Below are positions 40,130 through 57,908 of a DNA stretch of 64,000 bases, piece by piece. Under the pieces are notes generated by a model. It was not told the origin of the DNA and did not search any database. It worked only from the letters and a program-made list of their open reading frames with translations. How positions within the stretch are numbered: position 1 is the stretch's first letter; every line of letters starts with the position of its first letter. Made by a program: the position numbers and the translations under genes. Where the stretch lies: the sequence record MZ475892.1; one strand, written 5' to 3'.

Positions 40130-40807
40130 TCAGTCCTCTACAATAATAAGCACAGGTCTAACAGCATCATCGAACTTGATGAACGCAGCGCCAACAAGAT
40201 AGCCACCCTTCTCTACTTGTTTCACGACAGCCTTTTCAAGATCTGTTTCCCACTTATCGCGCTGTGCGGGTTTGTAAGAAGCAAACGTCTCAGAAGCATC
40301 GTAGTAGTTATAGGTACCACCAGTAGGCATTGGGATACGTGCAAGGAACTCTAAGCGACTACAGTTCTTGAACGGGGTCTTGCGTAGCTCTTGCGTCAGC
40401 TTGGTGTTCTCTGATTTAGAGCCAGGCACAGCGGTGAATACTTTCTTAGGCTGAGGCTCACGAGGAGCAGCAGGCATCTTCTCACGCGCTGGCGTATTCT
40501 TGTCGCTGGCTTTCTTAACACGAATACCAGAAACAGTCCCTGTGAATGGACGACTGCGACCAAGCAACGAACGTGCGGCCGTAGCGTCAACAACAAACAC
40601 AACAGACGGGTCATCACGGTGCAGCACATAGAACTTGTTACGTGCAGCGGCCTTGATACCGAATACGTCTTTGTCCTCAATATCCGCTTCGTGTTCTTTG
40701 TTCTCGATACTGACCTTGCGCTTACCTTCAAAGCGATACCAGTCGCAGTCATTGATAGACACGATAGGTGTTTTGCGTGAAGCACTCTCGCTCAGAAAAA
40801 TAAGCAT
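40130..40807 (-). CDS. Hypothetical protein, probable head-internal protein
   Basis: Starts MLIFLSESAS; carries the shared WxxFxG...DxFG domain. Confidence 0.6.
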   Translation of the reverse strand: MLIFLSESASRKTPIVSINDCDWYRFEGKRKVSIENKEHEADIEDKDVFGIKAAARNKFYVLHRDDPSVVFVVDATAARSLLGRSRPFTGTVSGIRVKKASDKNTPAREKMPAAPREPQPKKVFTAVPGSKSENTKLTQELRKTPFKNCSRLEFLARIPMPTGGTYNYYDASETFASYKPAQRDKWETDLEKAVVKQVEKGGYLVGAAFIKFDDAVRPVLIIVED

Positions 40808-44201: not shown

Positions 44202-44606
44202 CTAGTCGAGACGCAAGCGAATCAGCGAGCTAGACTCAGAATCAACAACGGTAACGTCATCTTCATCGTCCAGGTCTTCTTCGTCTTCAACATCATCCGC
44301 AGAATCATCTTCGGAGGTATTGAGACTAACTACTTCATCGTCATACAACGACTCGGCTCTTTCTTCCTCGGCAGTAAGCGCTAAGGCCGCAGACAGAGCA
44401 GTAACCGAATCAGCCATGCTTGATGCACTACTCACGGAGTTAACGAGGCAATTAGCTTCGAAGTTATCAGTGAGTTCGCATTCAAGGAACTGATCAGCAT
44501 CTGGCGCAACCGCAGCTTGAGTTAACAAGCGAGCTACGTCCAACCACTGTCCGTCACGCGCGGCGACAATTGCCAGTGCAGCTAAGGAACCAGATAAGGT
44601 CTTCAT
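44202..44606 (-). CDS. Small acidic prohead-associated protein
   Basis: 134 aa after the MCP; acidic tail, DSESSS, ends LIRLRLD. Confidence 0.6.
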   Translation of the reverse strand: MKTLSGSLAALAIVAARDGQWLDVARLLTQAAVAPDADQFLECELTDNFEANCLVNSVSSASSMADSVTALSAALALTAEEERAESLYDDEVVSLNTSEDDSADDVEDEEDLDDEDDVTVVDSESSSLIRLRLD

Positions 44607-44661: not shown

Positions 44662-45762
44662 CTAGCCTCGCACTGCCTTCGCCACAGAACGCACGTTCGC
44701 CAGAGTGAAGGAGAAGGTGCTTGACAGCAACCAGCCGCGGTCAGTGTTACCCTGGTTAGCACCAGAGGTAGGAGTAGACTGCGTACCGCCACGGGTAGTA
44801 TATACCGCATGGTAGTCCTGGTCAGCCAGAACATACAACTCGCCCTGTTTCAGAACGATGTGCTCTGGAGCACGCATACCATCAGTCACCAGCTCCATAC
44901 CCAGCAGGGTACCCAGACGACCGGTGATCAGCAAATCATACTTAGACACTGGGTCCAGAGCAGAAGAGAACTGATCGTTACCGATAATGTCGTTCCAGTA
45001 GTCCCACGCCATCACGGCGGTAGAGGTCGGCAGCGGCCATGAAGCAACGCTGTTTTTCAGGGTAGACAGCAGACGCGGAGTCAGGTCACCGTGAACGTAG
45101 GTGATCGGGTTAGCGATACCAACAGCTTCGTCACACGCTTGTTTCCACAGACGGTCTTCTGCAACCATGATAGAAGACAGGCCATCTTGCTGCGCACGGT
45201 CCAGCAGGTCGCCGTTGATCTGGTCCAGATCCATTTTGCTTACGCGGATGTTGGATTTCAGTTCGAACTCAGCCGGCTGGTAGGTACGGCCGCGGAACTG
45301 GCGGTAACCGAAATCGGTAGGACCAGTTGCGATGATTGCTTCTGCCTGGTGAATTTTCAGTTCGATACGAGCAATGTCGCCCTGACGAACGGTAGCACCC
45401 TTACAGACTTTACGCAGCAGACCAGCACGCTCAGCACGGTCTTCGATAGATGCAACGATAGAAGCACCAAGCGAGTCCCACTTAGCGCCAGAGGTATCAG
45501 CAGCAGCTTCGGCAAACAGTTCAATCTTCTCAGCTTCTGACAGACCGTTAGAAGCGTTAGACTGTGAATGAACCAGCTCACCATTTTGGAACGCGTTAGC
45601 CAGACGGCTGATCTGAGAGATCAGGTCTTTCTGGCTTGATGCGTTAATCTCACCAGTGCTTTGGCTCAGAGCTAATTCATTGCTCTTGCCGAAACGCAGG
45701 TCTTCAATCGGGGCGCCATTACGCAGAGTTACTTTCGCGCCGCGCATTAAGGAATTAGTCAT
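44662..45762 (-). CDS. Major capsid protein (HK97 fold)
   Basis: 366 aa, strongly biased codon use; follows protease/scaffold/decoration; DLLDRAQQDGLSSIMVAEDRLW spine-helix-like motif. Confidence 0.85.
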   Translation of the reverse strand: MTNSLMRGAKVTLRNGAPIEDLRFGKSNELALSQSTGEINASSQKDLISQISRLANAFQNGELVHSQSNASNGLSEAEKIELFAEAAADTSGAKWDSLGASIVASIEDRAERAGLLRKVCKGATVRQGDIARIELKIHQAEAIIATGPTDFGYRQFRGRTYQPAEFELKSNIRVSKMDLDQINGDLLDRAQQDGLSSIMVAEDRLWKQACDEAVGIANPITYVHGDLTPRLLSTLKNSVASWPLPTSTAVMAWDYWNDIIGNDQFSSALDPVSKYDLLITGRLGTLLGMELVTDGMRAPEHIVLKQGELYVLADQDYHAVYTTRGGTQSTPTSGANQGNTDRGWLLSSTFSFTLANVRSVAKAVRG

Positions 45763-46583: not shown

Positions 46584-48650
46584 TTATGAGCAGCGCAGAC
46601 GGGCCAGTTTATCTTCGAACGAGTCAGTGGAAGCTGAACTCTGTGATTGAATAGGTGCACTATCTTCGTCACCCAGAAGCTGCGCTGCAACGCTTGGTTG
46701 CTGCGGCTTAACAGGTGCGGTGACCTGCTGTTGAACTACAGGCTGAGCCTGCTGCACGGTACCGGCTGCGGCTTCGATTGACTGTGCAACTTCGTTCTGT
46801 GCAGTTTCAGACATAGACATAAGAGCCTGTGCTTTTGCCAGAGAAGTTGTCAGGAAATCTTTACCATGCGCGATAAACGCGTTTTGAATCAGCGCGTTCG
46901 GGTCTTTGATGCCTGCGGCAGACAGAGAGCGAACGAGAGAATCAACGATCGGGTTACGCACTTCACCCCAGTAGTTTTTGGTGATACCCAGCTGAGCAGA
47001 AGACAGGGCAGCAATCAAACGTTCCTGATGGGAAGCAACAGTGTCGTTGATAGTAGACGATACGCTGGTGGTAGCTTCGTTGATGCGAGCATCAGATTCA
47101 GCAACCAGCAATTTGTCTACAGGCATTTCGATTTGATACGGCATAAAGCCATACGCTTCGACTGTACCTACAACACCGCTTTGAACCAGGCTGTGTGAAA
47201 CGGCACGGATGAAATTATCAGTTGCGAAAGATTTACGCGCAACTTCTTCACCAACAACGTTAGACACAGAGTTGAACGTGGCGCGAGCAACTGGCTGGCC
47301 GTCGTAGTACATGTGTACCGATTCGACTTTACCGCCGTTAGAACGGCTGAGGCTTACCAGGGTCGGGTCCAGTTCGCCGTACTGAGCTTGTACGGTAGAC
47401 AGGCTGTCGAAGGTGCGATTAACGACTTTAGATTCGGAATCGAAGTCTTCGTCGTCGAGGTCGAGATCATCTTCTTCCAGATCTTCGTCATCGTCGAGGT
47501 CTTCGTCTTCATCATCAGCGCCAGACTCAGAATCGAAATCTTCGTCTTCGTCGTCTTCGCCATCCAGATCGTCTTCATCCAGATCTTCGTCGTCGCCTGC
47601 ACCAGATTCGGAGTCGAAATCTTCGTCTTCCAAATCTTCGTCATCTTCGAGGTCTTCGTCGTCTTCGTCGTCCAGATCATCTTCATCCAGATCTTCGTCG
47701 TCGAGGTCATCCTCTTCGTCTTCGTCGAAGTCATCTTCATCGAAGTCGTCTTCATCTTCATCACCATCAGATGATTCAGAATCAAAGTCGTCGTCAGAAT
47801 CTTCGTCTTCGTCGTCGAGGTCCAGATCGTCTTCGTCCAGGATATCAATGTCGCTGTCGCTATCATCGTCACCGGAGTTAGATTCAATCGGCTCGTCGAC
47901 CAGTGCCGCAGAGCAATGCGCACAGAAGACAGGCTCTTCATCGGAGCTTACAGTAAACGGCTGTTCGCATTTAGCGGAGCAGCTATAGATGTGAGCTTCG
48001 ACGGTACCGTCAGCGGCAGCAGAAGACAGAGCAGTAACAGCTTCAGGAGCGTCCTGAGCATCACAGCTATCAACAGCCTGGCCGGTGTACGGGTCGAATT
48101 TGGCAACAGTAGCAGCGTTGAAGCTACCAGTGTTGGACAGCGCTGTGAACGTTTGAGCACCAGACAGGGCCTGCGCGAAGTTGCGTTGAGCTTCTTCGGC
48201 AGTCTCGCCAGTAGCGATCAGGCTCGCGTGTTCAATCTGTTCATCAGCGTTTGCGCTCTCAGCAAGGAACTGTGATACGCGTTCATCAGTGATTTCTGAC
48301 AGGTCAGCAGAGCACGACGGGCAGCAGCCCTGAACGAGCGAAGCACTGTCGCTGATAACGTGGCTACCACAACCATCCAGACAGATAGTGTAATGCGCCT
48401 TCACGTCACCAGCAGAAGACTGAGACTGAACTTCGGCTTTCTCAACCAAATCAGGATGCTCATCCAGCAGTTCGTTACCGCCGGTTGGGTTGTAGAGGTC
48501 AGCGCCACTTTGCGAAGCAAAGCCCACACCGTCAGAAGAACCATAAATCATTAAGTTCTGGCCTAACGCAGTGCGACGAAAGTTCTCTACTGCCTGATTA
48601 TGGTTTTTACCGACACACAGGATACCCGCGAGTTGGGTAATCTTTGGCAT
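46584..48650 (-). CDS. Prohead scaffold/core protein with two Zn-ribbon motifs and a long acidic tract
   Basis: Start MPKITQ at 48650 (SD GAGG); CLDGC..CPSC and CSAKC..CAHC; D/E tract. Confidence 0.65.
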   Translation of the reverse strand: MPKITQLAGILCVGKNHNQAVENFRRTALGQNLMIYGSSDGVGFASQSGADLYNPTGGNELLDEHPDLVEKAEVQSQSSAGDVKAHYTICLDGCGSHVISDSASLVQGCCPSCSADLSEITDERVSQFLAESANADEQIEHASLIATGETAEEAQRNFAQALSGAQTFTALSNTGSFNAATVAKFDPYTGQAVDSCDAQDAPEAVTALSSAAADGTVEAHIYSCSAKCEQPFTVSSDEEPVFCAHCSAALVDEPIESNSGDDDSDSDIDILDEDDLDLDDEDEDSDDDFDSESSDGDEDEDDFDEDDFDEDEEDDLDDEDLDEDDLDDEDDEDLEDDEDLEDEDFDSESGAGDDEDLDEDDLDGEDDEDEDFDSESGADDEDEDLDDDEDLEEDDLDLDDEDFDSESKVVNRTFDSLSTVQAQYGELDPTLVSLSRSNGGKVESVHMYYDGQPVARATFNSVSNVVGEEVARKSFATDNFIRAVSHSLVQSGVVGTVEAYGFMPYQIEMPVDKLLVAESDARINEATTSVSSTINDTVASHQERLIAALSSAQLGITKNYWGEVRNPIVDSLVRSLSAAGIKDPNALIQNAFIAHGKDFLTTSLAKAQALMSMSETAQNEVAQSIEAAAGTVQQAQPVVQQQVTAPVKPQQPSVAAQLLGDEDSAPIQSQSSASTDSFEDKLARLRCS
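47428..47873 (-). repeat. Asp/Glu low-complexity tract punctuated by four DFDSES motifs
   Basis: About 150 aa almost entirely D/E/L/F. Confidence 0.9.
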
Positions 48651-48695
48651 GGTTAAAACCCTCATAAGGAATGAAGTCGTTGAATCGACAGGTTG

Positions 48696-48728: not shown

Positions 48729-49859
48729 TTAGACTTTTCTGCTATCAATATCTGACTGAGGAATATAGCGATTTTCGAAGTATTTATTCACTACTTCGAC
48801 ACCGTTTAGCGTATAAACGTTACGCAAACTATCTCCCCATACCATTAGTTCTGCCAGCGTTGCAAAGTGCTCCGTAGGCACGGATTTAATGGTCAGTGCA
48901 TTGTTCGAATCAGGATGGATTCGCTTACCACGAATGGCCTGATCAAACTTCATACGGTCTACGTTACGCAGCATAGTATGGTCCACAAAGTGAGCCAATT
49001 CATGCGTCATAACGTGGGCCATACTTTTGCTGTTATATCCACCCAGCAGACGAACAAGCTGTTGTGGACTAATAGCGATAACACCGTACATAAAGCCACG
49101 AATCATGTACGTGCTAATGTGAGAACCACCTACATCGTTACCTTCCTGCCCGCCCAGAATAGAAACGTACAGACGCTTAAACGGCAGATTAACGTTCAGC
49201 CCTACAGCAGGCATTACGTTGTCCTGGATATCCTTTAGCACGAATGCTGGTGGGCTAACACCGTTGACTGAGATGTTTAGGCCAGGGATATTCAGCTCAT
49301 CTGCACCACGCACTTCGAGATGTACCGTACCACATTTAGGCAGTGGTTGAATTGCGTAGTTGTTTGGAGTACCACCAGCATAAGCAATATCAGAGTATTG
49401 CAGAGGCGTGAATTTACCGAACTGAGGCCTGTCAAGTTCTCGACGTTGACGCGCTTCTTTGGACGCACGATCATCATCGATAGGAGTATCAACAGGAGGT
49501 TTTGGCTCAGGTTCAGGCGGTGGGATTGGCACTTCGGCAGCGGCAGGTTTTGGAACTTTCGCAGGCTTAGGCACTTTGACAGGCTTAGGCTTAACAGACT
49601 TCTCCTCGAGTGGAGTAAAGTCAAAGCTATCAAACAACGCATCAGGCTGAGCAGCAAAAGGCCTGCTATTAGCCAGTATCATTCCAGCGCTCTCCCCGCT
49701 GATTGCAACAGCTTGAGGGTACTTAGGGTGAGCGATGTAATAGAGGTCATCGTTAACTTGATGGAGACCTACGACCTCGCGTGGCTGCATACGCACACCA
49801 TTTGAAATCATAGTATCTCCACCTAAGTAACGGACGAATTTGTAGTCCGTTACATCCAT
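48729..49859 (-). CDS. HExxH zinc-metalloprotease-like protein
   Basis: Start MDVTDY at 49859 (TAATG coupling); VMTHELAHFVDH...EHFA; Pro-rich linker. Confidence 0.65.
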   Translation of the reverse strand: MDVTDYKFVRYLGGDTMISNGVRMQPREVVGLHQVNDDLYYIAHPKYPQAVAISGESAGMILANSRPFAAQPDALFDSFDFTPLEEKSVKPKPVKVPKPAKVPKPAAAEVPIPPPEPEPKPPVDTPIDDDRASKEARQRRELDRPQFGKFTPLQYSDIAYAGGTPNNYAIQPLPKCGTVHLEVRGADELNIPGLNISVNGVSPPAFVLKDIQDNVMPAVGLNVNLPFKRLYVSILGGQEGNDVGGSHISTYMIRGFMYGVIAISPQQLVRLLGGYNSKSMAHVMTHELAHFVDHTMLRNVDRMKFDQAIRGKRIHPDSNNALTIKSVPTEHFATLAELMVWGDSLRNVYTLNGVEVVNKYFENRYIPQSDIDSRKV

Positions 49860-50638
49860 TAACGCATCCGCAGCAGGTGTTCTTTGTACGTTGCAGCACA
49901 AGCAAATGCTGGGTCATCCACAGAGCTACACTCGAAACCAGTGAGACCCTTACAGTCACGATACACCAGGCGGCCTGTACGTGCATCCAAATACGTAGGC
50001 TTGTTGAACGCTGTGTGCGAACAGAAGTTACGATTCTTCGGCGTTACCATCTGACCACAGATACTGCATTTATAAGCACGGTAGGTTGTGCCCTTGCTGT
50101 ACGTGTTCAGTTCACCGCTGAGAATACGGTCACAACGTTCCTTACAGCGCGTGCGGTCAAACGCCAGCAACAGAGTCAGACGCGCATGATTGCCACGGAA
50201 GTTTTTCAGCTTAGACAGGTTCGAGTCAAAGATCATGCCCATTGCTTGACGATAGTCTTTGTTGTTGTGCTCGATAAACGTCGGCTTACCAATGAACGTC
50301 TGATATGCAAGGCGTCCTTGATCAGGGTTAAACGTCAACCATTCCTGTAAGCTGAATGCATCACCGTTAGTGTTCGGCAACTCCGTGATGTTTACCACAA
50401 CAGGCGCAATGATATAGTCACGGATATCACGCGAGGTGTTGTACATCTCAGCAGCTTTAGGCAGCCACACGTTAACGTCGAGGTTAAAAGATCCCGTCTC
50501 AATACCGAAACGCGAAGCATCAACACGAATAGACTTAGCGTTTCGGCTAACATCTTCTTTGTGCATATCAATCGCGTTCAGTCCGACGAGGCCCATGTCT
50601 GAGGTATCAAACGACTCAGACTTGATGAGCTGGGTCAT
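49859..50638 (-). CDS. Prohead maturation protease
   Basis: NTNGDAF...TFIGKPTFIEH...YSKG plus CSICG..CSH, resembling phage capsid maturation proteases; upstream of scaffold and MCP. Confidence 0.75.
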   Translation of the reverse strand: MTQLIKSESFDTSDMGLVGLNAIDMHKEDVSRNAKSIRVDASRFGIETGSFNLDVNVWLPKAAEMYNTSRDIRDYIIAPVVVNITELPNTNGDAFSLQEWLTFNPDQGRLAYQTFIGKPTFIEHNNKDYRQAMGMIFDSNLSKLKNFRGNHARLTLLLAFDRTRCKERCDRILSGELNTYSKGTTYRAYKCSICGQMVTPKNRNFCSHTAFNKPTYLDARTGRLVYRDCKGLTGFECSSVDDPAFACAATYKEHLLRMR

Positions 50639-51066: not shown

Positions 51067-51921
51067 TTAACCTCGAAGTGCACCACGCGCCCAAGACTTA
51101 GCGAGAGCCAGAGTCATACGGCTAGGGTTCTGGAGTTTGACTTCACCCCGATGAACAGCAGTGAACGGTTCATTAGGGTTCTCGCTGCGTCCAGAACGAT
51201 ACGCAGATTCATTGAAGCCATCAAACAAAGTAACCAGCCAGCCAGTTGACTTGTCCGAGCATTCGCCGCACTTGTTGTCCCAGCTAATCTTACCGCATGT
51301 ACGGCCACCAGCATTGATAGCGTATGACACACGGTCTTTGTCTGAGTAAACGTCCTTAGCACGAATGGTCTTGAACGTCACACGAGACGAGGACTCGGAG
51401 CGTGGCATCATGCGTGCTTTAATCGCTTCTGTATCAATAGAGGACCAGAATGATTCAAACAGCATACCCAGCTTCTGATCGATAGGCAGCTTGAGTCCAT
51501 TGATTTGCGCAATGGTACTGGAGCTGTCATTGATAACGCGATTCAGGAAGTAGCCACCAATGATTATCGGCAGCTGTGTTCCCTGTGAGCCTACAGTGAT
51601 ACCAGATTGCTTGCAGTAGATCTCAGACAGACCGACAGCGAGACGCGCAAGAACCTTGAACGTCTCTTTCTCTGTCGTGTTTGCGATTTCAGTATACAGA
51701 CGCGCGGCAATGTTCGGCACGACTGTACGCTTGGCAACGCTGGCAATATCTTCGGCTGTGATAGTCTGACCAAGTTTCTTCTTGGCCGCTAACGCAAAGG
51801 CGTTATACAGGCTGGCTTTGTTCTCCGACGTCAGGGCCTCGTTCAGCTTGCTGATCGTCGTCTCCGCGCTGCTTTTCAGACTCGGAGTTTGAACTGTTTT
51901 GAGTCTCGCAACTTTCGGCAT
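51067..51921 (-). CDS. Hypothetical protein
   Basis: 284 aa; SD AGGAG lies inside the end of the GT gene. Confidence 0.6.
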   Translation of the reverse strand: MPKVARLKTVQTPSLKSSAETTISKLNEALTSENKASLYNAFALAAKKKLGQTITAEDIASVAKRTVVPNIAARLYTEIANTTEKETFKVLARLAVGLSEIYCKQSGITVGSQGTQLPIIIGGYFLNRVINDSSSTIAQINGLKLPIDQKLGMLFESFWSSIDTEAIKARMMPRSESSSRVTFKTIRAKDVYSDKDRVSYAINAGGRTCGKISWDNKCGECSDKSTGWLVTLFDGFNESAYRSGRSENPNEPFTAVHRGEVKLQNPSRMTLALAKSWARGALRG

Positions 51922-53035
51922 TGGAGTTTTTCTCCTGGTTGAGGGCTTGCTTCGCTAAAATCCCAAGCAGGCCAGAGGCTTTGATTTCTGTCTCAACGTC
52001 AAGCCCACGATGCAGACTGAGTTGAGCTAAATAGTTCAATGCAGGTTCGACCATATTAAGATTACGACAACCCCAATAGGCGCATTCGTAACATAAGTCT
52101 AAATTAACAGAGGTCTGGTCAAACAAGAAACTTTTTGGATTCTGTTGCGCAACAGACAGTCCCTGTATAGCCATGCCCACAGAGTTGATCATATCGTCAC
52201 GGCGATAGAAAATATCAGACAGCATCGCGTAGCACTCAATACGATCAGAGCGGGCTGCAATAGCACGGTAGCAGCAGTTAACGGCTTCCTGAATAAAGCC
52301 CTGCTTGAACGTTGCTTTTGACAGTTCCAGATTAGCCACAGCAACATAGTCAGACCACGTTGCGAGTTTGGTGAGACGTGCCACTTCGGCGCGTGCATCA
52401 TCAAGCAGGTCAGCACGGTCATAGTATGCAACCGAGTAGCACAGCTCACGCGCATAATAGAACGAGCAGCGCTGGTCACGAGGCCAATCGCCCGCATCAC
52501 GCGCCAGCTCCATGAGATAACCACGAGGCTTAGTGTGATCTGGGAAATGGTCAGTAGCGAACTCAGCACGCACAGTATGCGGTGGGTTACCTTCACGAAT
52601 ACGCATCAACACTTCATGCGCACGGTAACGCCACGTATATGCTCGACTCTTGTATGCTTTCATCTGGTCATACTGGCTATCGCCGTTACGCATCAGAATC
52701 CAAACACCATCAGCCTGTTCAATGTCAGGCATCTGACGTAACTTCTCAACCCAATCTGGATCGTCGAAGCGTTCATCAATGTCCAGCCAAACGATTAAAT
52801 CATCTTCATGGAATGGCGCAGCGGCCAGGTCGCGACTAGCACCCAGATTGCGTTCTTCGGAGATGTCCGTAGAGTGATACAGCGCTGGGTGCGCGAACTC
52901 GGAAACAATCTGAGTCGTTGCATCAATGCTGCCTGTGTCCACGATACTGATAGCATCAGCAGCAGACACATGCTTCAACCACTCGGCCATATTCTTTTCT
53001 TCATCACGGCAGATAGCCGCTACGCAAATTCTCAT
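51803..53035 (-). CDS. GT2-family glycosyltransferase with TPR-like C-terminal region
   Basis: ICVAAICRDEEKNM...IVDTGSIDAT, WLDIDE, WRYRAHE, FYYARE, helical repeats. Confidence 0.85.
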   Translation of the reverse strand: MRICVAAICRDEEKNMAEWLKHVSAADAISIVDTGSIDATTQIVSEFAHPALYHSTDISEERNLGASRDLAAAPFHEDDLIVWLDIDERFDDPDWVEKLRQMPDIEQADGVWILMRNGDSQYDQMKAYKSRAYTWRYRAHEVLMRIREGNPPHTVRAEFATDHFPDHTKPRGYLMELARDAGDWPRDQRCSFYYARELCYSVAYYDRADLLDDARAEVARLTKLATWSDYVAVANLELSKATFKQGFIQEAVNCCYRAIAARSDRIECYAMLSDIFYRRDDMINSVGMAIQGLSVAQQNPKSFLFDQTSVNLDLCYECAYWGCRNLNMVEPALNYLAQLSLHRGLDVETEIKASGLLGILAKQALNQEKNSNAESCETQNSSNSESEKQRGDDDQQAERGPDVGEQSQPV

Positions 53036-53046
53036 GAGTGCCTCTT

Positions 53047-53955
53047 TTATACAAGAACGTTACCGCTATCCCACCACTTCTTGCCATAGATTTCAGACAG
53101 GCGGTAGTCAAGCACGATTGGTTGGTCAAGATCGACCTGAAGGATATCGCGACCTAGTGCAGCGCTATAAACTGTTTTCTCCTCAGTGTATACGCGTATC
53201 TCTAGTTCCATGTCGCCTTGCGAATACTTGGGAACGAACGGCACATTCAGATCGCCGTTGAACCCCTGACCGAGCGTATCGTCAAAGTAAGTAGACATAC
53301 GAATCTCGGTACCCTGATTGATAATGGTGGGTGCATACACCATGCGATTGTTATACGCCGTGTAGTCGGCCACCGTGGACTGTTGAATCAGGCGGCGCTT
53401 ATAGATGCGCGTTACGCCTTTGTCATCCACTACCGTACGATACTGATTGTAGAACCAGTTGATCTCATAGAACTTAACTGGCTTGAGGCCAGCAGATGAA
53501 ACCAACGAGGCAGTCATACGGTGATAGGTCTTCTCCGTATTCAGACGATAGAGCAGAATCTTAAACGCGTACCATTGGTAAACGTCTAACGTGATTGAGC
53601 CTGCATCTGATTGCTGAGTACCGTTGGTGAGGATATACGAGAAGCAATCGCCACCAACATAACCACTACGGGGATCGTAAATGAACGCATCACTAAAGCT
53701 ATTCAGTTCGACAGTACCCAACAGTGGGTCGCTCACTTTGATTGCAGCAAGGCGCCAACCACGCTGGGCTGGAACCTTGTCGAGAACGCCTTCTGTGGGA
53801 CTGTGACCTGTTAACTCGTCGCGTGCGCCTTGCAGAATCTGATCGATAGTGATTTCAGTTTTACCTGAGTTCTTCACACGTATCGTTCTGTTTGGTGCTA
53901 TTGGCTTATAGTTGCGCCAGTAGTCAAACGTACAAGGCAAAGAGAGCATAGTCAC
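53047..53955 (-). CDS. Virion protein with Ig/cadherin-like (Big_9-type) domain
   Basis: GTVELNSFSDAFIYDPRSGYVGGDCFSYILTNG. Confidence 0.65.
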   Translation of the reverse strand: MTMLSLPCTFDYWRNYKPIAPNRTIRVKNSGKTEITIDQILQGARDELTGHSPTEGVLDKVPAQRGWRLAAIKVSDPLLGTVELNSFSDAFIYDPRSGYVGGDCFSYILTNGTQQSDAGSITLDVYQWYAFKILLYRLNTEKTYHRMTASLVSSAGLKPVKFYEINWFYNQYRTVVDDKGVTRIYKRRLIQQSTVADYTAYNNRMVYAPTIINQGTEIRMSTYFDDTLGQGFNGDLNVPFVPKYSQGDMELEIRVYTEEKTVYSAALGRDILQVDLDQPIVLDYRLSEIYGKKWWDSGNVLV

Positions 53956-55922
53956 TCCAACTTATATTTACGTCGGAACTCTGCTAGACCCATGACAGGA
54001 ATGCCTTTGTCCATGGCCTTCTGGAGTTTCGCAGAACCCGAGCCTGGGTCTTTGGCGATAAGAATGGTTGTATCTGCTTTCATGCTATCTGAGGCAGTAC
54101 CACCAAGCTCAACGATACGCTGCATCAGTTCACGATCACGAATACCTGTGAATGCAACGTTAACGCCTTTCAGCTTAGAACTCTTCACCTGAACACGTTT
54201 CGGTGCAACCAGCTTAACACCGATTTCATTCGCAAGCTGATACGCAGAGACACACGCAAGAGCAATGTCAGGCGATTTTGTTTTGATGCCGTGAATATCC
54301 GAGATAGCTTTAGCGAGCGCCAGAGGATTCTGTTTGCGCACTAGCTTGTCAAGGTCAGGCACGCTATCGACCACTTTATCAAACGTAGTGTTAGCGCCAC
54401 GCATGAAGTACGGCGAGCACGCTTTAAGCCACGTATTGACAGCAACGCCTGAGCGTAATGCTTTGAGGTCTTTCGCAAGCTGAGCACCACGCGAGTCACC
54501 AACCACTTCACGCAGCACACCGATAGTTGCAGCGAACAAACGGGCAGGTGTATCAATGCCAGACTCTACGAGCAGCTTCGACGTACTCGGTCCTGTGTTA
54601 GCAACGTCCAATCCTTTGAGGAATGAACTGAGCAGTCGAGTAGTGCCTACCTCAGTCTTGGTATTGATAACGAACTCAACGCCATTGACTTTGTAAGGCA
54701 CATCAGGCAGCTTTGGCTTCTTCGCAGGCTTGAGAATCTCCATGATGTATGGGATTACCTTACCGCTACGAATCAGCTTGACCGTAGCACCTGGGCCAAG
54801 AGGCTTCTTAGCATGAGGCGCAGTCGCTTTGCCTTTAGGTTTGAGGTAGCCGTGCTCAACATAGAATCCATTGTGACCATTAGCACGCTGTACAGTGACG
54901 CCGCCAGTCATCAGCGTTGGTGGGAAGATGATAACAGGCTGCAAGATACCGTACTTGGTCTCTTGGTAGATAACATCTTCTACCTTAACGATCACTGTGT
55001 CAGCTTCTGCATTCATTTTGAACTTGAATGCGTGCTTTGGATTAGATGCAGTCGCTTTAGGGCTGGGTACATCTTCCGTGAGTACAACACCATCCAGCTC
55101 GTAGATAGCTTTAGACAGACGGCGCTCCAAGAACGCAATCAACTCGTCTTCTGAGTTGAAGCGCTTTGGTGGCGTATGCCTAACGACTTCGAATCCCCAG
55201 CGCTCCAGCAGGGCGAACTGCTTAGACTGCTTGAGCGTAGCACCGTCACCGCCGATGATAGAGAAGCACACCATGCGGACGTACTTGAACTCGGACGCTG
55301 TTTCAAAGTTACGCACAAGTCCAGACGCAGCGTTACGAGCGGCCTTGAAGCGACCACCAGCAGACTCATGCATCTTAGCCATGAATGTCTTTTGAGGAAT
55401 GAGTGCCTCAAAGCGCAACACCGTCTGACCTCTGACTGGAATCTTTTTAGGGATTTTCATCGCAGGGATATGATGGGATACGTCTTTACCGTGAGTAGCA
55501 TCACCACGGGTATAAGCCTTTACAGGCACACCGTCTTGATACACAATCTCAAGGCTCAAGCCATCGAGCTTGTCGGTTGCAACGTAGTCCACATCTTTCG
55601 ACAGTGCTTTGGCAATCTGCTTCGAGCCTGCCTGAAACTGATTGAGACTTGCCATAGGTACAGGCAGCTTAACATCAGCATCATCACGCTGACCAATCTT
55701 ACGAGCCAGCTTCGACTTAGGCCATTTAGCGTCGATGTAGTTACGGATTGAATCGTACACTGCATCGCTCACCAGACCTTCATCATCCGTATGATATGCG
55801 TTGTCCAGAGCGGTTATTAAGTTACGCACTTGCGTCTGGTTCAAGGTGTCCAAGACCTTTTGAGGGTTCTTGGACAGTTGCTTGAGACTAACAGAGGCAG
55901 AAATAGAAAGCCTTACTTTCAT
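53952..55922 (-). CDS. ligA: NAD+-dependent DNA ligase
   Basis: YH...VSDAVYD, KLDGLS, TRGD, ELDGVV, AFKFK, LIRSGKVIP, and C-terminal BRCT (VAFTG..GG). Confidence 0.95.
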   Translation of the reverse strand: MKVRLSISASVSLKQLSKNPQKVLDTLNQTQVRNLITALDNAYHTDDEGLVSDAVYDSIRNYIDAKWPKSKLARKIGQRDDADVKLPVPMASLNQFQAGSKQIAKALSKDVDYVATDKLDGLSLEIVYQDGVPVKAYTRGDATHGKDVSHHIPAMKIPKKIPVRGQTVLRFEALIPQKTFMAKMHESAGGRFKAARNAASGLVRNFETASEFKYVRMVCFSIIGGDGATLKQSKQFALLERWGFEVVRHTPPKRFNSEDELIAFLERRLSKAIYELDGVVLTEDVPSPKATASNPKHAFKFKMNAEADTVIVKVEDVIYQETKYGILQPVIIFPPTLMTGGVTVQRANGHNGFYVEHGYLKPKGKATAPHAKKPLGPGATVKLIRSGKVIPYIMEILKPAKKPKLPDVPYKVNGVEFVINTKTEVGTTRLLSSFLKGLDVANTGPSTSKLLVESGIDTPARLFAATIGVLREVVGDSRGAQLAKDLKALRSGVAVNTWLKACSPYFMRGANTTFDKVVDSVPDLDKLVRKQNPLALAKAISDIHGIKTKSPDIALACVSAYQLANEIGVKLVAPKRVQVKSSKLKGVNVAFTGIRDRELMQRIVELGGTASDSMKADTTILIAKDPGSGSAKLQKAMDKGIPVMGLAEFRRKYKLE

Positions 55923-55961: not shown

Positions 55962-57908
55962 TTATGATGCGATAGGGTCCTTGTTGACCTCGTAATCTTC
56001 CGCCATGTCGTACACGCGATTGAACAGCTTAGGCGCCATATCTTTCACATGCTCGGCATAGTCAAACAGGTTCTGCTTACGCGCACGATTGACACGCACC
56101 TGACGTACTTCGTCTGGGCTATTCGTAATGTCGTACAGCGTATACACAACGATGTTATCGGAGGAGTTATGAGTGCTTACCTTGAGGACTACCCAATCGC
56201 GTTGCAGTTTAGCATCAGCCTTGAAGCGGAGGACGTCGCCCTCTTCGGCCTCATCTGCACGCGCATCAGGAGTAGACTTGTTAGTTGCGGCAATCTTCTT
56301 CGCAGTCTCGGCAGCTTCTTTCTCTGCCTCAGCCACATCAGAATCTTGGTCTTCATCCGCTTCTGTTTCGTCTACGGCGTCAGAGGTATCGTCATCGGAG
56401 TCGTCGGCTTCTTCGTCGTCATCTCCAGACGTATCTTCCTCGTCATCTCCTCCGTCGTCGGCATCATCAGATTCCACATCGGAGTCGTCATCTGAATCGT
56501 CGGAGCTATCATCCCCATCCTCATCATCAGACTCTGAATCGCTATCGTCAGCATCTTCTTCTGCATCTGGATCGTCCTCTTCCGTTTCGTCGTCTGGGTC
56601 AACGTCACCGCCTTCAGGGTCATCCTCTTCCAGCTCGGAGTCGTCGTCGAGGTTATCCTCTTCTGAGTCGTCTGGCTCATCATCCTTGGTTGAGTTCTTA
56701 GCAGAGCCGCCTTTCTTGCGTACCTTAGACTTAGGAGCAACTTCCTCTTCGTCATCATCTGGTTCATCAATGTCAGACAGGTCAAGCTCGGAATCGACTT
56801 CGTTGTCTGCGCTATCATCACCGCCGAACATAGAGCTAACGGTATCCTCCAGACTGAACACATCACCTGCAAACGGGCTGCGTTGAAGAATGTCTTCAAG
56901 GCGCTGCTCATCTAGGTCCTGCTCAAGGTCCAGATGTTCTTCGATAGCATCATCGAGGTTTTCATGCTCAATGACTTTAGGCAGACGACGACGATCATTC
57001 AGGCCAGGGTCGTCAGAGTAGATGGTACGCTGTGGTCCTGTAGGCGCTTCAATCTCACCGTCACGCACTTTGCGTCTGAGGTCACGCATCTCTGCGCTAC
57101 GCTCACGCGCTTTCTTACGTGCTTCCTGTGCGAGTTCCTTGCGCTGTTGTTTACGCTCAAGGGAAGATGCCTCACGACCTAAACGTTCAGCTTCCTCAAG
57201 TTCACGGCCTTCGCGATGGCGAGCGCGACGAACCATACGACGATACTGTTTGATAGTATCAACATCAACACTACCAACAGGCCAGTCATTAAGAGGCAGA
57301 ATGTTTGTGTCATGCACAATCAGATCGTACTGAGCATCATCAACCTTCAGGAACAGGCCTTCTGTGTTGATAACGATACCGCCTTTGCCTTGACGCAAGA
57401 AACGCACGCCAATCATATCGTTGCGGTACATCTTATAAATACCCTTGGTAGTCTTCACAGGATATTCATTGCCTGGCACCATGCGCCATTGATAGTTGGC
57501 AAAGTCAACGCCGTACACAGCTTCTGACTTAACCGATTTCGGCATAAAGCGAGGAGCATCAAACAGGGTGCGATTGATCTTACGCTCAAGGCTCTTAGCG
57601 CCAGCAACGCGTGCAGTAGTACCAGCCTCACGTTTAACCACAGCTGGTGGCTTACGCAACTTAGAGCTACGTTCAATGAGGAACAGACCTGTCGTTTTGT
57701 CGAGAGGGAAATCGACGTGCGGCATGTCTGGGAAAATCAGTGTATAACGACCACCATTCCTGAGTGGCAGAATACCAAAAGTGTCGCCATTACGAATCAT
57801 ACGTTTGTGTGATCGCTGCGTCACCTCTCGTCCACGTGAACCAGTAAACTGCATCCACGCGTACTTCGATACGGCATCTTCATATGATGCGGATTCGGAG
57901 AGTACCAT
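55962..57908 (-). CDS. Acidic/basic block protein, probable head-internal protein
   Basis: 648 aa; starts MVLSESAS; two copies of the shared domain, an R/E coiled coil, and a long D/E tract. Confidence 0.6.
   Translation of the reverse strand: MVLSESASYEDAVSKYAWMQFTGSRGREVTQRSHKRMIRNGDTFGILPLRNGGRYTLIFPDMPHVDFPLDKTTGLFLIERSSKLRKPPAVVKREAGTTARVAGAKSLERKINRTLFDAPRFMPKSVKSEAVYGVDFANYQWRMVPGNEYPVKTTKGIYKMYRNDMIGVRFLRQGKGGIVINTEGLFLKVDDAQYDLIVHDTNILPLNDWPVGSVDVDTIKQYRRMVRRARHREGRELEEAERLGREASSLERKQQRKELAQEARKKARERSAEMRDLRRKVRDGEIEAPTGPQRTIYSDDPGLNDRRRLPKVIEHENLDDAIEEHLDLEQDLDEQRLEDILQRSPFAGDVFSLEDTVSSMFGGDDSADNEVDSELDLSDIDEPDDDEEEVAPKSKVRKKGGSAKNSTKDDEPDDSEEDNLDDDSELEEDDPEGGDVDPDDETEEDDPDAEEDADDSDSESDDEDGDDSSDDSDDDSDVESDDADDGGDDEEDTSGDDDEEADDSDDDTSDAVDETEADEDQDSDVAEAEKEAAETAKKIAATNKSTPDARADEAEEGDVLRFKADAKLQRDWVVLKVSTHNSSDNIVVYTLYDITNSPDEVRQVRVNRARKQNLFDYAEHVKDMAPKLFNRVYDMAEDYEVNKDPIAS
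56335..56823 (-). repeat. Asp/Glu/Ser low-complexity tract
   Basis: About 160 aa dominated by D/E/S. Confidence 0.85.

Follow-up and report, generated by a model that had tools for sequence, protein, structure and literature searches.

We analysed a 64,000-nucleotide stretch of the genome of Erwinia phage pEa_SNUABM_34 (MZ475892.1), referred to here as the window, and in particular a 688-aa acidic protein encoded in its head gene module. The phage is a 264-kb jumbo myophage, Alexandravirus-like and a member of the Lu11/PaBG group; its nearest relatives are Alexandra, AD1 and Y3, with Yoloswag, the JA phages, Lu11, PaBG, NCTB and phiRSL1 further off. The acidic protein carries an excess of hydrophobic-x-Ser-x-Ser motifs, and these are probably recognition sites for the phage's own 259-aa serine protease of the T4 gp21 fold, which would cut after the second Ser. 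The same judgement extends to the acidic protein itself, which is probably the scaffold or core protein of the head of this Alexandravirus-like jumbo phage. On the evidence of the alignments described below, the S-x-S motif is genuine, is under selection and is placed as a protease site would be; cleavage at the motifs, the responsible enzyme and the scissile bond are what we infer from it. Coordinates are those of the window (position in MZ475892.1 minus 62,000) and are collected in Table 1, where "/" marks the proposed scissile bond.

Motifs were counted in the 693-aa form of the scaffold-like protein and compared with shuffles of the whole protein and with shuffles confined to blocks of 15-50 residues. 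A preliminary description of this DNA had noted, by eye, more than 20 [S/A]-x-S motifs in the protein and had proposed a comparison with shuffles. The count is 30, against 16.1 +/- 3.3 in whole-protein shuffles and 17 +/- 3.3 in block shuffles (p <= 0.0003), a strong enrichment that survives when local composition is preserved. S-x-S occurs 22 times against 8.5-8.9 from shuffles (~8.7 in blocks), and hydrophobic-x-S-x-S 15 times against ~2. Exclusion of the acidic tract of the protein did not abolish the excess (25 vs 15.3, 17 vs 7.3 and 11 vs 1.9, respectively). Elsewhere in the window, hydrophobic-x-S-x-S was only mildly in excess (39 vs 26.5). The motif had also been reported in the major capsid protein (MCP; ALSQS at residues 31-35 and HSQS at 65-68), the protease (KSESF, 6-10) and a 134-aa protein (DSESS, 122-126), and all of these are present. 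Neither the MCP nor the protease as a whole is enriched in [S/A]-x-S (4 vs 6.4 and 3 vs 2.3), and their motifs stand out by position and conservation, not by number.

Conservation was assessed in an alignment of scaffolds from 12 genomes, covering three genera and metagenomic relatives. S-x-S was the first-ranked conserved pair at a spacing of two, with 12 instances vs 1.66 expected (Poisson 2e-7), and the runner-up, A-x-G, reached 3 vs 0.5. The middle residue was variable in 8 of the 12 conserved S-x-S. Invariant serines around a free middle residue were likewise found at aligned sites in the MCP pro-piece, the protease N-terminus and short N-terminal leaders of other proteins. A logo built from 125 distinct instances reads F/V/I at P5 (78% hydrophobic), D/E/Q/A at P4, S at P3, mostly E/Q but also L/T/D/N/S/H at P2, S at P1 and S/G/A at P1' (76%). 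The [S/A] originally proposed for P3 thus holds for Ser, Ala being rare, and the consensus is here better written as hydrophobic (P5)-x-S-x-S followed by S/G/A. Ser makes up 11% of the scaffold and Asp plus Glu 25%, and the protease shares its fold with the Glu-specific T4 gp21; from this it could be argued that the motif is a by-product of Ser-rich low complexity and that cleavage really takes place at Glu-type sites like those of T4 and phiKZ. The block shuffles and the rank of S-x-S among conserved gapped pairs make this very improbable, as do the Glu-type motifs themselves: [S/A/G]-x-E is depleted in the scaffold (11 vs 18 expected), the 12-genome alignment holds no conserved [S/A/G]-x-E and three conserved [L/I]-x-E, and the only L-x-E near the end of the MCP pro-piece is not conserved in the aligned relatives.

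The minus-strand head module consists of the protease, a metallopeptidase, the 688/693-aa acidic protein, a 240-aa virion protein, the MCP, a 134-aa acidic protein, two small proteins and the tail sheath. Without the metallopeptidase, the order protease, scaffold-like protein, 240-aa virion protein, MCP and sheath is kept out to phiRSL1 and BcepSauron, and comparison of the relatives' gene order places the scaffold gene between protease and MCP from Alexandra to phiRSL1. The PaBG orthologue, gp82, is missing from the 14 Coomassie-stained virion bands, in which gp80, gp81 and gp83 are present (PMC7412058). An AlphaFold2 (AF2) model of the scaffold has a mean predicted local distance difference test (pLDDT) of 68 and is usable per domain only. 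In it, the N-terminal half forms two beta-alpha modules, each with a CxxC...CPxC zinc ribbon behind it; a 148-aa disordered polyacidic tract leads on to a helical C-domain, from which ~50 disordered residues run to a terminal helix. The N-terminal half (47892-48650, minus strand) is an internal duplication, each copy of which has a HicB/UPF0150-like beta-alpha motif (A..G.t.eeA..nF..A) ahead of the ribbon. We know of no phage scaffold with zinc ribbons. Searches with the scaffold returned no Pfam domain, no PDB sequence match, no Foldseek match at E <= 0.001 and no useful ESM-Atlas neighbour. The want of a structural match to a solved scaffold carries little weight, because scaffolds are diverse.

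Existing labels for this protein are of another kind. Its orthologues in Lu11, PaBG and NCTB are annotated as 'putative ATPase' and '60S ribosomal-like protein', and phrog_20988 and RefSeq label it a P-loop ATPase. The ATPase label was rejected: Walker A (GxxxxGK[S/T]) is not conserved, there is no Pfam ATPase domain and the model contains no P-loop fold. The sole Walker A look-alike is G-I-L-C-V-G-K-N, in which the Lys is replaced by Gln in Alexandra and Gly in JA11.

Exact copies of DFDSES lie at residues 293, 349, 376 and 407, in the acidic tract, bearing out the earlier remark that four identical copies punctuate a stretch made almost purely of D/E/L/F (85%). The copies differ at synonymous codon positions and are therefore not recent DNA duplicates, the motif being maintained at the protein level. 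Tandem Repeats Finder returned for the tract only a diverged 81-nt repeat of 1.9 copies. Relatives keep three to five [F/I/V/L/M]-[D/E]-S-E-S copies at shifting positions, and the length and register of the tract otherwise drift.

Together with four further sites outside the tract, these motifs give eight candidate cleavage sites in the scaffold, seven of which have pLDDT <50 in the model (81-83, 262-264, the four DFDSES and 674-676). Site 81-83 coincides exactly with a six-residue segment of pLDDT <50 (75-80 of the 688-aa model) that separates the first beta-alpha module from the zinc ribbon. Site 674-676 lies in the disordered segment directly before the terminal helix and aligns with [T/V/A]-A-S in Lu11, PaBG, GR7B, Peetri, RSL1 and Sauron. 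The basic, hydrophobic C-terminal end beyond it is conserved across the family and, by analogy, may be a coat-binding tail. The weakest of the eight is site 51-53, at the edge of a confidently folded strand. Cuts at all eight would, by computation, release a basic N-terminal peptide of 5.7 kDa, pieces of 3.2 and 18.6 kDa, four acidic peptides of 3.0-6.6 kDa, a 28-kDa C-domain and a 1.9-kDa tail with the terminal helix.

The 259-aa protein is the only candidate for a serine prohead protease, as no canonical S77 or S78 match was found anywhere in a 98.5%-identical sister genome, and its gene lies in the head module next to those for scaffold and MCP. An AF2 model built from 49 relatives (pLDDT 84, predicted template modelling score 0.83) had T4 gp21 as its only significant Foldseek match (5JBL, E 6e-4; next match E 0.1). 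VIA-align aligned it with 5JBL at Z 11.7 (root-mean-square deviation 3.0 A, 151/166 residues) and with herpesvirus proteases at Z 5.2-5.4. According to the model, the protease has the T4 gp21/assemblin fold. In hhalign, Ser181 falls on gp21 Ser140 and His124 three residues off gp21 His85, the gp21 residues being the catalytic ones; the hhalign match to gp21 is not significant (E 0.28). The nucleophile is followed by an inserted C-x2-C...C-x-H zinc ribbon, and searches of Pfam, PDB sequences and PDB profiles with the protease returned only zinc-finger noise from this ribbon; at E <= 1, no Pfam S77 or S78 match was found for any of 49 family members. In the survey of Iyer et al. (2021; PMC7824862), jumbo phages of group 2.2 are nonetheless assigned to S77.

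A profile of seven proteases recovered a wider family of 80 IMG/VR loci. Relatives as distant as ~40% identity retain the N-terminal [S/A]-x-[S/A] of the protease in the same position. For this clade and for PaBG types the sequence is S-x-S-F-[D/S], with E/A/H/Q/K/R/V/L/S/I/T/M in the middle, and more distant proteases have A-P-A-F-D, S-E-A-F-D or Y-[A/S]-x-A. Residues 181-185 (50084-50098, minus strand) are S-K-G-T-T in the S-x-S clade vs S-M-G-A-[Y/W] in other relatives; the residues flanking Ser181 are candidate specificity determinants, a lead only, as the comparison is confounded by phylogeny. The family also includes gp95 of Mycobacterium phage Bxz1 (L102, 4836-8948), a 1370-aa protein encoded just upstream of the major head protein gene, in which the protease is N-terminal and fused to a long, low-complexity, scaffold-like region. 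No motif excess was found in Bxz1 gp95.

The MCP is homologous to gp27 of Bacillus phage G (PDB 6WKK, E 2e-7). In PaBG virions the MCP is ~20% lighter than predicted, several proteins are multiply processed and a 221-kDa helicase-like protein is present (PMC7412058). Cleavage at MCP site 2 (residue 68) would remove 18.4% of the mass here and 19% at the PaBG equivalent, and a cut at the position equivalent to that in phage G (residue 100) would remove 26.5%. Site 2 fits the PaBG loss better and is on this basis the preferred, if ambiguous, position of the cut.

Sister lineages use a different vocabulary. Scaffolds of this clade and of L041 contain 22-28 S.S vs 8-11 expected (z +5 to +6); A.A is not consistently enriched in them and [T/V]-A-S is essentially absent (z +2.0 in L041). 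Lu11, PaBG, NCTB, Peetri, Ep032 and several metagenomic scaffolds have no S.S excess, with A.A at z +2 to +5 and [T/V]-A-S at up to z +6.6. At aligned scaffold domain boundaries, D-S-E-S of this phage corresponds to A-T-A-S in Lu11 and PaBG and to S-D-S-S in NCTB. MCP site 2 switches alongside the scaffold (V-A-T-A-S in Lu11, A-L-A-S in L073), as does the leader of a 648-aa protein, whose PaBG-type orthologues have I-A-E-A or A-V-A. Such a joint switch in several independent substrates is predicted by co-evolution with one protease.

N-terminal sequencing showed that the MCP of phage G is shortened from 282 to 255 residues (PMC5646251), and in the deposited MCP sequence this places the cut after V-A-L-A. 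The phage G protease, gp19, is 32% identical to the present protease over 156 aa. The family as a whole therefore appears, from the sequences compared, to read small-x-small, with Ser-x-Ser as the dialect of this clade. The preliminary description had spoken of a new specificity and of cleavage after Ser at [S/A]-x-S. Cleavage after Ser has since gained from the enrichment, the invariant serines, the gp21/assemblin fold and the joint substrate switch; its consensus, its uniqueness and the number of sites needed correction, and 'clade dialect' describes the specificity better than 'new', as phage G matures its MCP after A-L-A. More tentatively, it is possible that in Alexandravirus, Yoloswagvirus, Salmondvirus and their metagenomic kin the P1/P3 preference of the gp21-fold protease has moved from Ala to Ser, with dozens of sites rewritten in step, the hydrophobic-S-x-S(-A-S) leader serving as a portable load-and-cut tag and the residues around Ser181 as candidate determinants of the switch.

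Ser is assigned to P3 and P1 by analogy with T4 [L/I]-x-E, phiKZ [S/A/G]-x-E, assemblin V-x-A/S and phage G A-L-A/Q. In T4, many cuts in core proteins leave short acidic peptides, the N-terminus of the MCP is trimmed and short N-terminal targeting leaders are removed from internal proteins. The herpesvirus assemblin consensus is V/L-x-A/S, and a cut near the C-terminus of the scaffold frees it from the coat protein. By the mechanism that we favour, the protease would recognise Ser at P3 and P1 together with a hydrophobic P5 (P4 in leaders), and the bond cut would be the one following the second Ser. In the prohead, the C-terminal helix of the scaffold would be detached 17 residues from the end, the N-terminal modules separated from one another and the polyacidic tract chopped into four acidic peptides of 27-56 residues. 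The MCP pro-piece would be trimmed at residues 35 and 68 to leave a mature protein of ~32 kDa, the protease would lose its own nine N-terminal residues, and short L-S-x-S(-A-S) leaders would be removed from cargo proteins.

This scheme resembles T4 gp21 (MEROPS S77) and gp22 in the fold (5JBL), in the protease gene lying beside those for scaffold and MCP and in the predicted outcome. It differs in that the present protease is not detected by S77 hidden Markov models or PDB sequences, has an inserted zinc ribbon and would read S-x-S, not [L/I]-x-E. Herpesvirus assemblin has a related fold (human cytomegalovirus, Kaposi's sarcoma-associated herpesvirus and Epstein-Barr virus proteases, Z 5.2-5.4), a small P1 and an M-site near the C-terminal end of the scaffold, comparable to S-Q-S 17 residues from the end here. 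However, the likeness is structural and distant, and Ser at P1 and P3, the hydrophobic P5 and a scaffold gene separate from the protease are particular to the present system. Glu is the P1 residue for the proteases of T4, phiKZ, 201phi2-1 and SPN3US alike (PMC5694885, PMC10052503). Those of phiKZ (gp175) and SPN3US (gp245) likewise come from giant myophages, whose head proteins are in many cases cut at a P3-x-P1 motif and have further sites within the propeptides (PMC5694885, PMC10052503). However, these two enzymes recognise Glu ([S/A/G]-x-E, A-x-E) and cleave themselves C-terminally; in the present system, Ser would occupy P1 and the conserved self-site lies at the N-terminus. Phage G gp19 and gp27 are sequence homologues of the protease and MCP, and that MCP is trimmed at a small-x-small A-L-A; P1 and P3 are, however, both Ala, and the pro-piece is only 27 residues long. 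The scaffolds of Lu11, PaBG and NCTB are orthologues that share the domain order and the positions of short motifs at domain boundaries, yet carry A-[T/V]-A-S or A-x-A, have acidic tracts without internal punctuation and lack a neighbouring metallopeptidase gene.

Prohead-protease specificity has been mapped for few phages only. If true, a small-x-small enzyme with the gp21 fold would mean that P1 specificity is evolutionarily plastic in this fold, and would link the phage enzymes to the Ala/Ser preference of herpesvirus assemblin. Some 50 Erwinia and Dickeya biocontrol phages are annotated almost wholly as 'hypothetical protein'; in the Erwinia and Dickeya phages the motif could be used to predict mature termini, to spot packaged cargo (ligase, helicase-like and unknown proteins) and to correct the 'ATPase' label of the scaffold.

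Several observations weigh against this interpretation. Only 9 of the 30 [S/A]-x-S in the scaffold lie in predicted disordered parts, no more than the 29% expected by area, and conserved motifs inside folded parts, two of them in the zinc ribbons (CPSCS/YSCSA), are unexplained by cleavage of linkers; judged from the model, motifs inside folded parts need not be cut. In the MCP, the position aligned with the experimental cut of phage G is L-G-A/S (residues 98-100), not S-x-S. The co-variation of substrates between lineages may represent one or two evolutionary events only. Moreover, the dialects are not strict, as PaBG-type proteases keep an N-terminal S-x-S-F though their scaffolds use A-x-A. 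The P1' residue is also small (S/G/A), and the register of the cut therefore cannot be fixed from sequence. The metallopeptidase is confined to lineages rich in S-x-S (this clade and L041/L042) and is absent in Lu11, PaBG, NCTB and RSL1 types. Lastly, a search of the available literature found no virion mass spectrometry or N-terminal data for this clade (Alexandra, Y3, Yoloswag, AD1 and the JA phages), no proteomics in the Dickeya phage paper, no cleavage data in the actinophage capsid paper and no paper linking a prohead protease with S-x-S or A-x-A.

The motifs in folded parts bear on a non-proteolytic explanation, in which S-x-S is conserved as a tag for capsid targeting or coat binding that stays on the protein, or as a site of phosphorylation or O-glycosylation. 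Many conserved S-x-S lie in such parts and a glycosyltransferase gene (51803-53035) is found in the same module. Against this, the motif also occurs at the protease N-terminus, at an MCP boundary that fits the mass loss in PaBG and ahead of detachable C-terminal tails, and the PaBG virion bands do not include the scaffold orthologue; we regard a non-proteolytic role as quite unlikely. The glycosyltransferase is of family 2, is encoded on the minus strand and is conserved in Yoloswag, JA11 and PaBG. Glycosylation by it was rejected as the cause of the motif, as PaBG has the gene and its scaffold shows no S-x-S excess.

With regard to the cut register, the serine protease might read the motif and cut elsewhere, either before the second Ser (X/S, like A/S in assemblin) or after the small P1'. 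The sister motif A-[T/V]-A-S can be parsed as A-x-A/S, with Ser at P1' as in assemblin, and P1' is S/G/A in most instances of the present motif. A cut before the second Ser would, however, make the highly variable middle residue (E/Q/L/T/H/K/R...) P1, which has no parallel among the characterised members of the fold, and the aligned D-S-E-S/K of this phage and A-T-A-S/S of Lu11 have the last Ser in common. A different bond thus has some chance of being the right one, if a small one, and cleavage after the second Ser is preferred.

The metallopeptidase contains two KMPT-N-like domains, a Pro/Lys-rich linker and a HELAH zincin motif. A conserved N-S-x-S-M, in which the middle residue varies greatly, lies just upstream of its HExxH. 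Its gene lies between those for protease and scaffold, and this position, with its restriction to lineages that have S-x-S-rich scaffolds, raises the alternative that it cuts the S-x-S sites, alone or with the serine protease. We give this little credence: phages without it carry A-x-A or [T/V]-A-S at homologous positions, which the serine protease orthologue must handle, the N-terminal S-x-S-F of the protease is also present in PaBG-type phages that lack the metallopeptidase, and its co-occurrence with S-x-S may reflect a single event in the clade. The serine protease remains the preferred enzyme.

Table 1. Features of the head module and candidate cleavage sites in the window
Feature	Position	Strand	Details
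Scaffold-like head protein	46584..48650	-	688 aa from the ATG used by relatives and the deposited coding sequence; open reading frame (ORF) and orthologues
Longer form of scaffold ORF	46584..48665	-	693 aa
Polyacidic tract	47430..47873	-	Residues 265-412, 148 aa, 85% D/E/L/F; pLDDT <50 throughout
Four F-D-S-E-S motifs (S-E-S coordinates)	47772-47780, 47604-47612, 47523-47531, 47430-47438	-	Sequence
Candidate site F-A-S-Q-S/G	48507..48515	-	Residues 51-53; conserved in 12 genomes
Candidate site V-Q-S-Q-S/S	48417..48425	-	Residues 81-83; serines conserved in 12 genomes, middle Q/E/T
Candidate site I-E-S-N-S/G	47874..47882	-	Residues 262-264, start of acidic tract; serines conserved, middle N/Q/E/L; disordered in model
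Candidate site I-Q-S-Q-S/S	46638..46646	-	Residues 674-676, 17 residues from C-terminus; conserved in 12 genomes
C-terminal 17-residue tail	46587..46637	-	Holds terminal amphipathic helix, 679-686 of 688-aa model
Major capsid protein	44662..45762	-	366 aa; phrog_2522
Candidate MCP site 1, L-S-Q-S/T	45658-45666	-	Residues 33-35; middle Q/S/E across relatives
Candidate MCP site 2, V-H-S-Q-S/N	45559-45567	-	Residues 66-68; middle Q/T/E/H/V across relatives
134-aa acidic protein	44202..44606	-	V-D-S-E-S/S-S at 44232-44240; aligned with Alexandra, Yoloswag, JA11
KMPT-N / HExxH metallopeptidase	48729..49901	-	PF20294 E 2.6e-20 and second weaker copy; HELAH motif
Prohead serine protease	49859..50638	-	259 aa; phrog_18299 head maturation protease
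Protease His124	50267-50269	-	Invariant in 49 relatives
Protease Ser181	50096-50098	-	Invariant in 49 relatives
Protease N-terminal I-K-S-E-S/F-D	50612-50620	-	S-x-S residues 7-9
284-aa protein with conserved internal R-S-E-S/S	51067..51921, site 51391-51399	-	Relatives at aligned position S-E-S, S-E-S, S-L-S, S-E-S
NAD-dependent DNA ligase, leader L-S-I-S-A-S-V-S	55887..55910 (gene 53952-55922)	-	Sequence and relatives
648-aa protein, leader L-S-E-S-A-S	57885..57902 (gene 55962-57908)	-	Middle residue E/V/A in relatives
225-aa protein, leader L-S-E-S-A-S	40778..40795 (gene 40130-40807)	-	Sequence

Other possible substrates were found in the window (Table 1). The acidic C-terminal half of the 134-aa protein is followed by V-D-S-E-S-S-S and by a basic, hydrophobic tail of nine residues (L-I-R-L-R-L-D). 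This is the same layout as at the scaffold C-terminal end (K-L-A-R-L-R), and the protein may, to judge from this sequence, be another small core protein whose coat-binding tail can be cleaved off. The ligase leader is shared by this phage, L033/L034 and JA11-type phages. Alexandra, AD1, Y3 and Yoloswag lack it; their ligases start directly at the conserved S-L-K-R-L, the leader having been gained or lost between close relatives. Leaders were also counted proteome-wide, over 214 of the 264 kb and with approximate gene calls and gene classes. With these calls, an N-terminal S-x-S was found in 18/116 late-block vs 8/116 early-block genes (Fisher p 0.03), and there were five N-terminal tags of the M-E-x-x-[V/I]-S-L-S type in the 214 kb. 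Outside the window, unrelated proteins at positions 168088, 173514, 174648, 197438 and 206628 of MZ475892.1 begin with M-E-[L/M]-x-[V/I]-S-L-S or M-K-I-F-V-S-L-S. Two of these tagged proteins are encoded on the plus strand, in an otherwise early-looking region.

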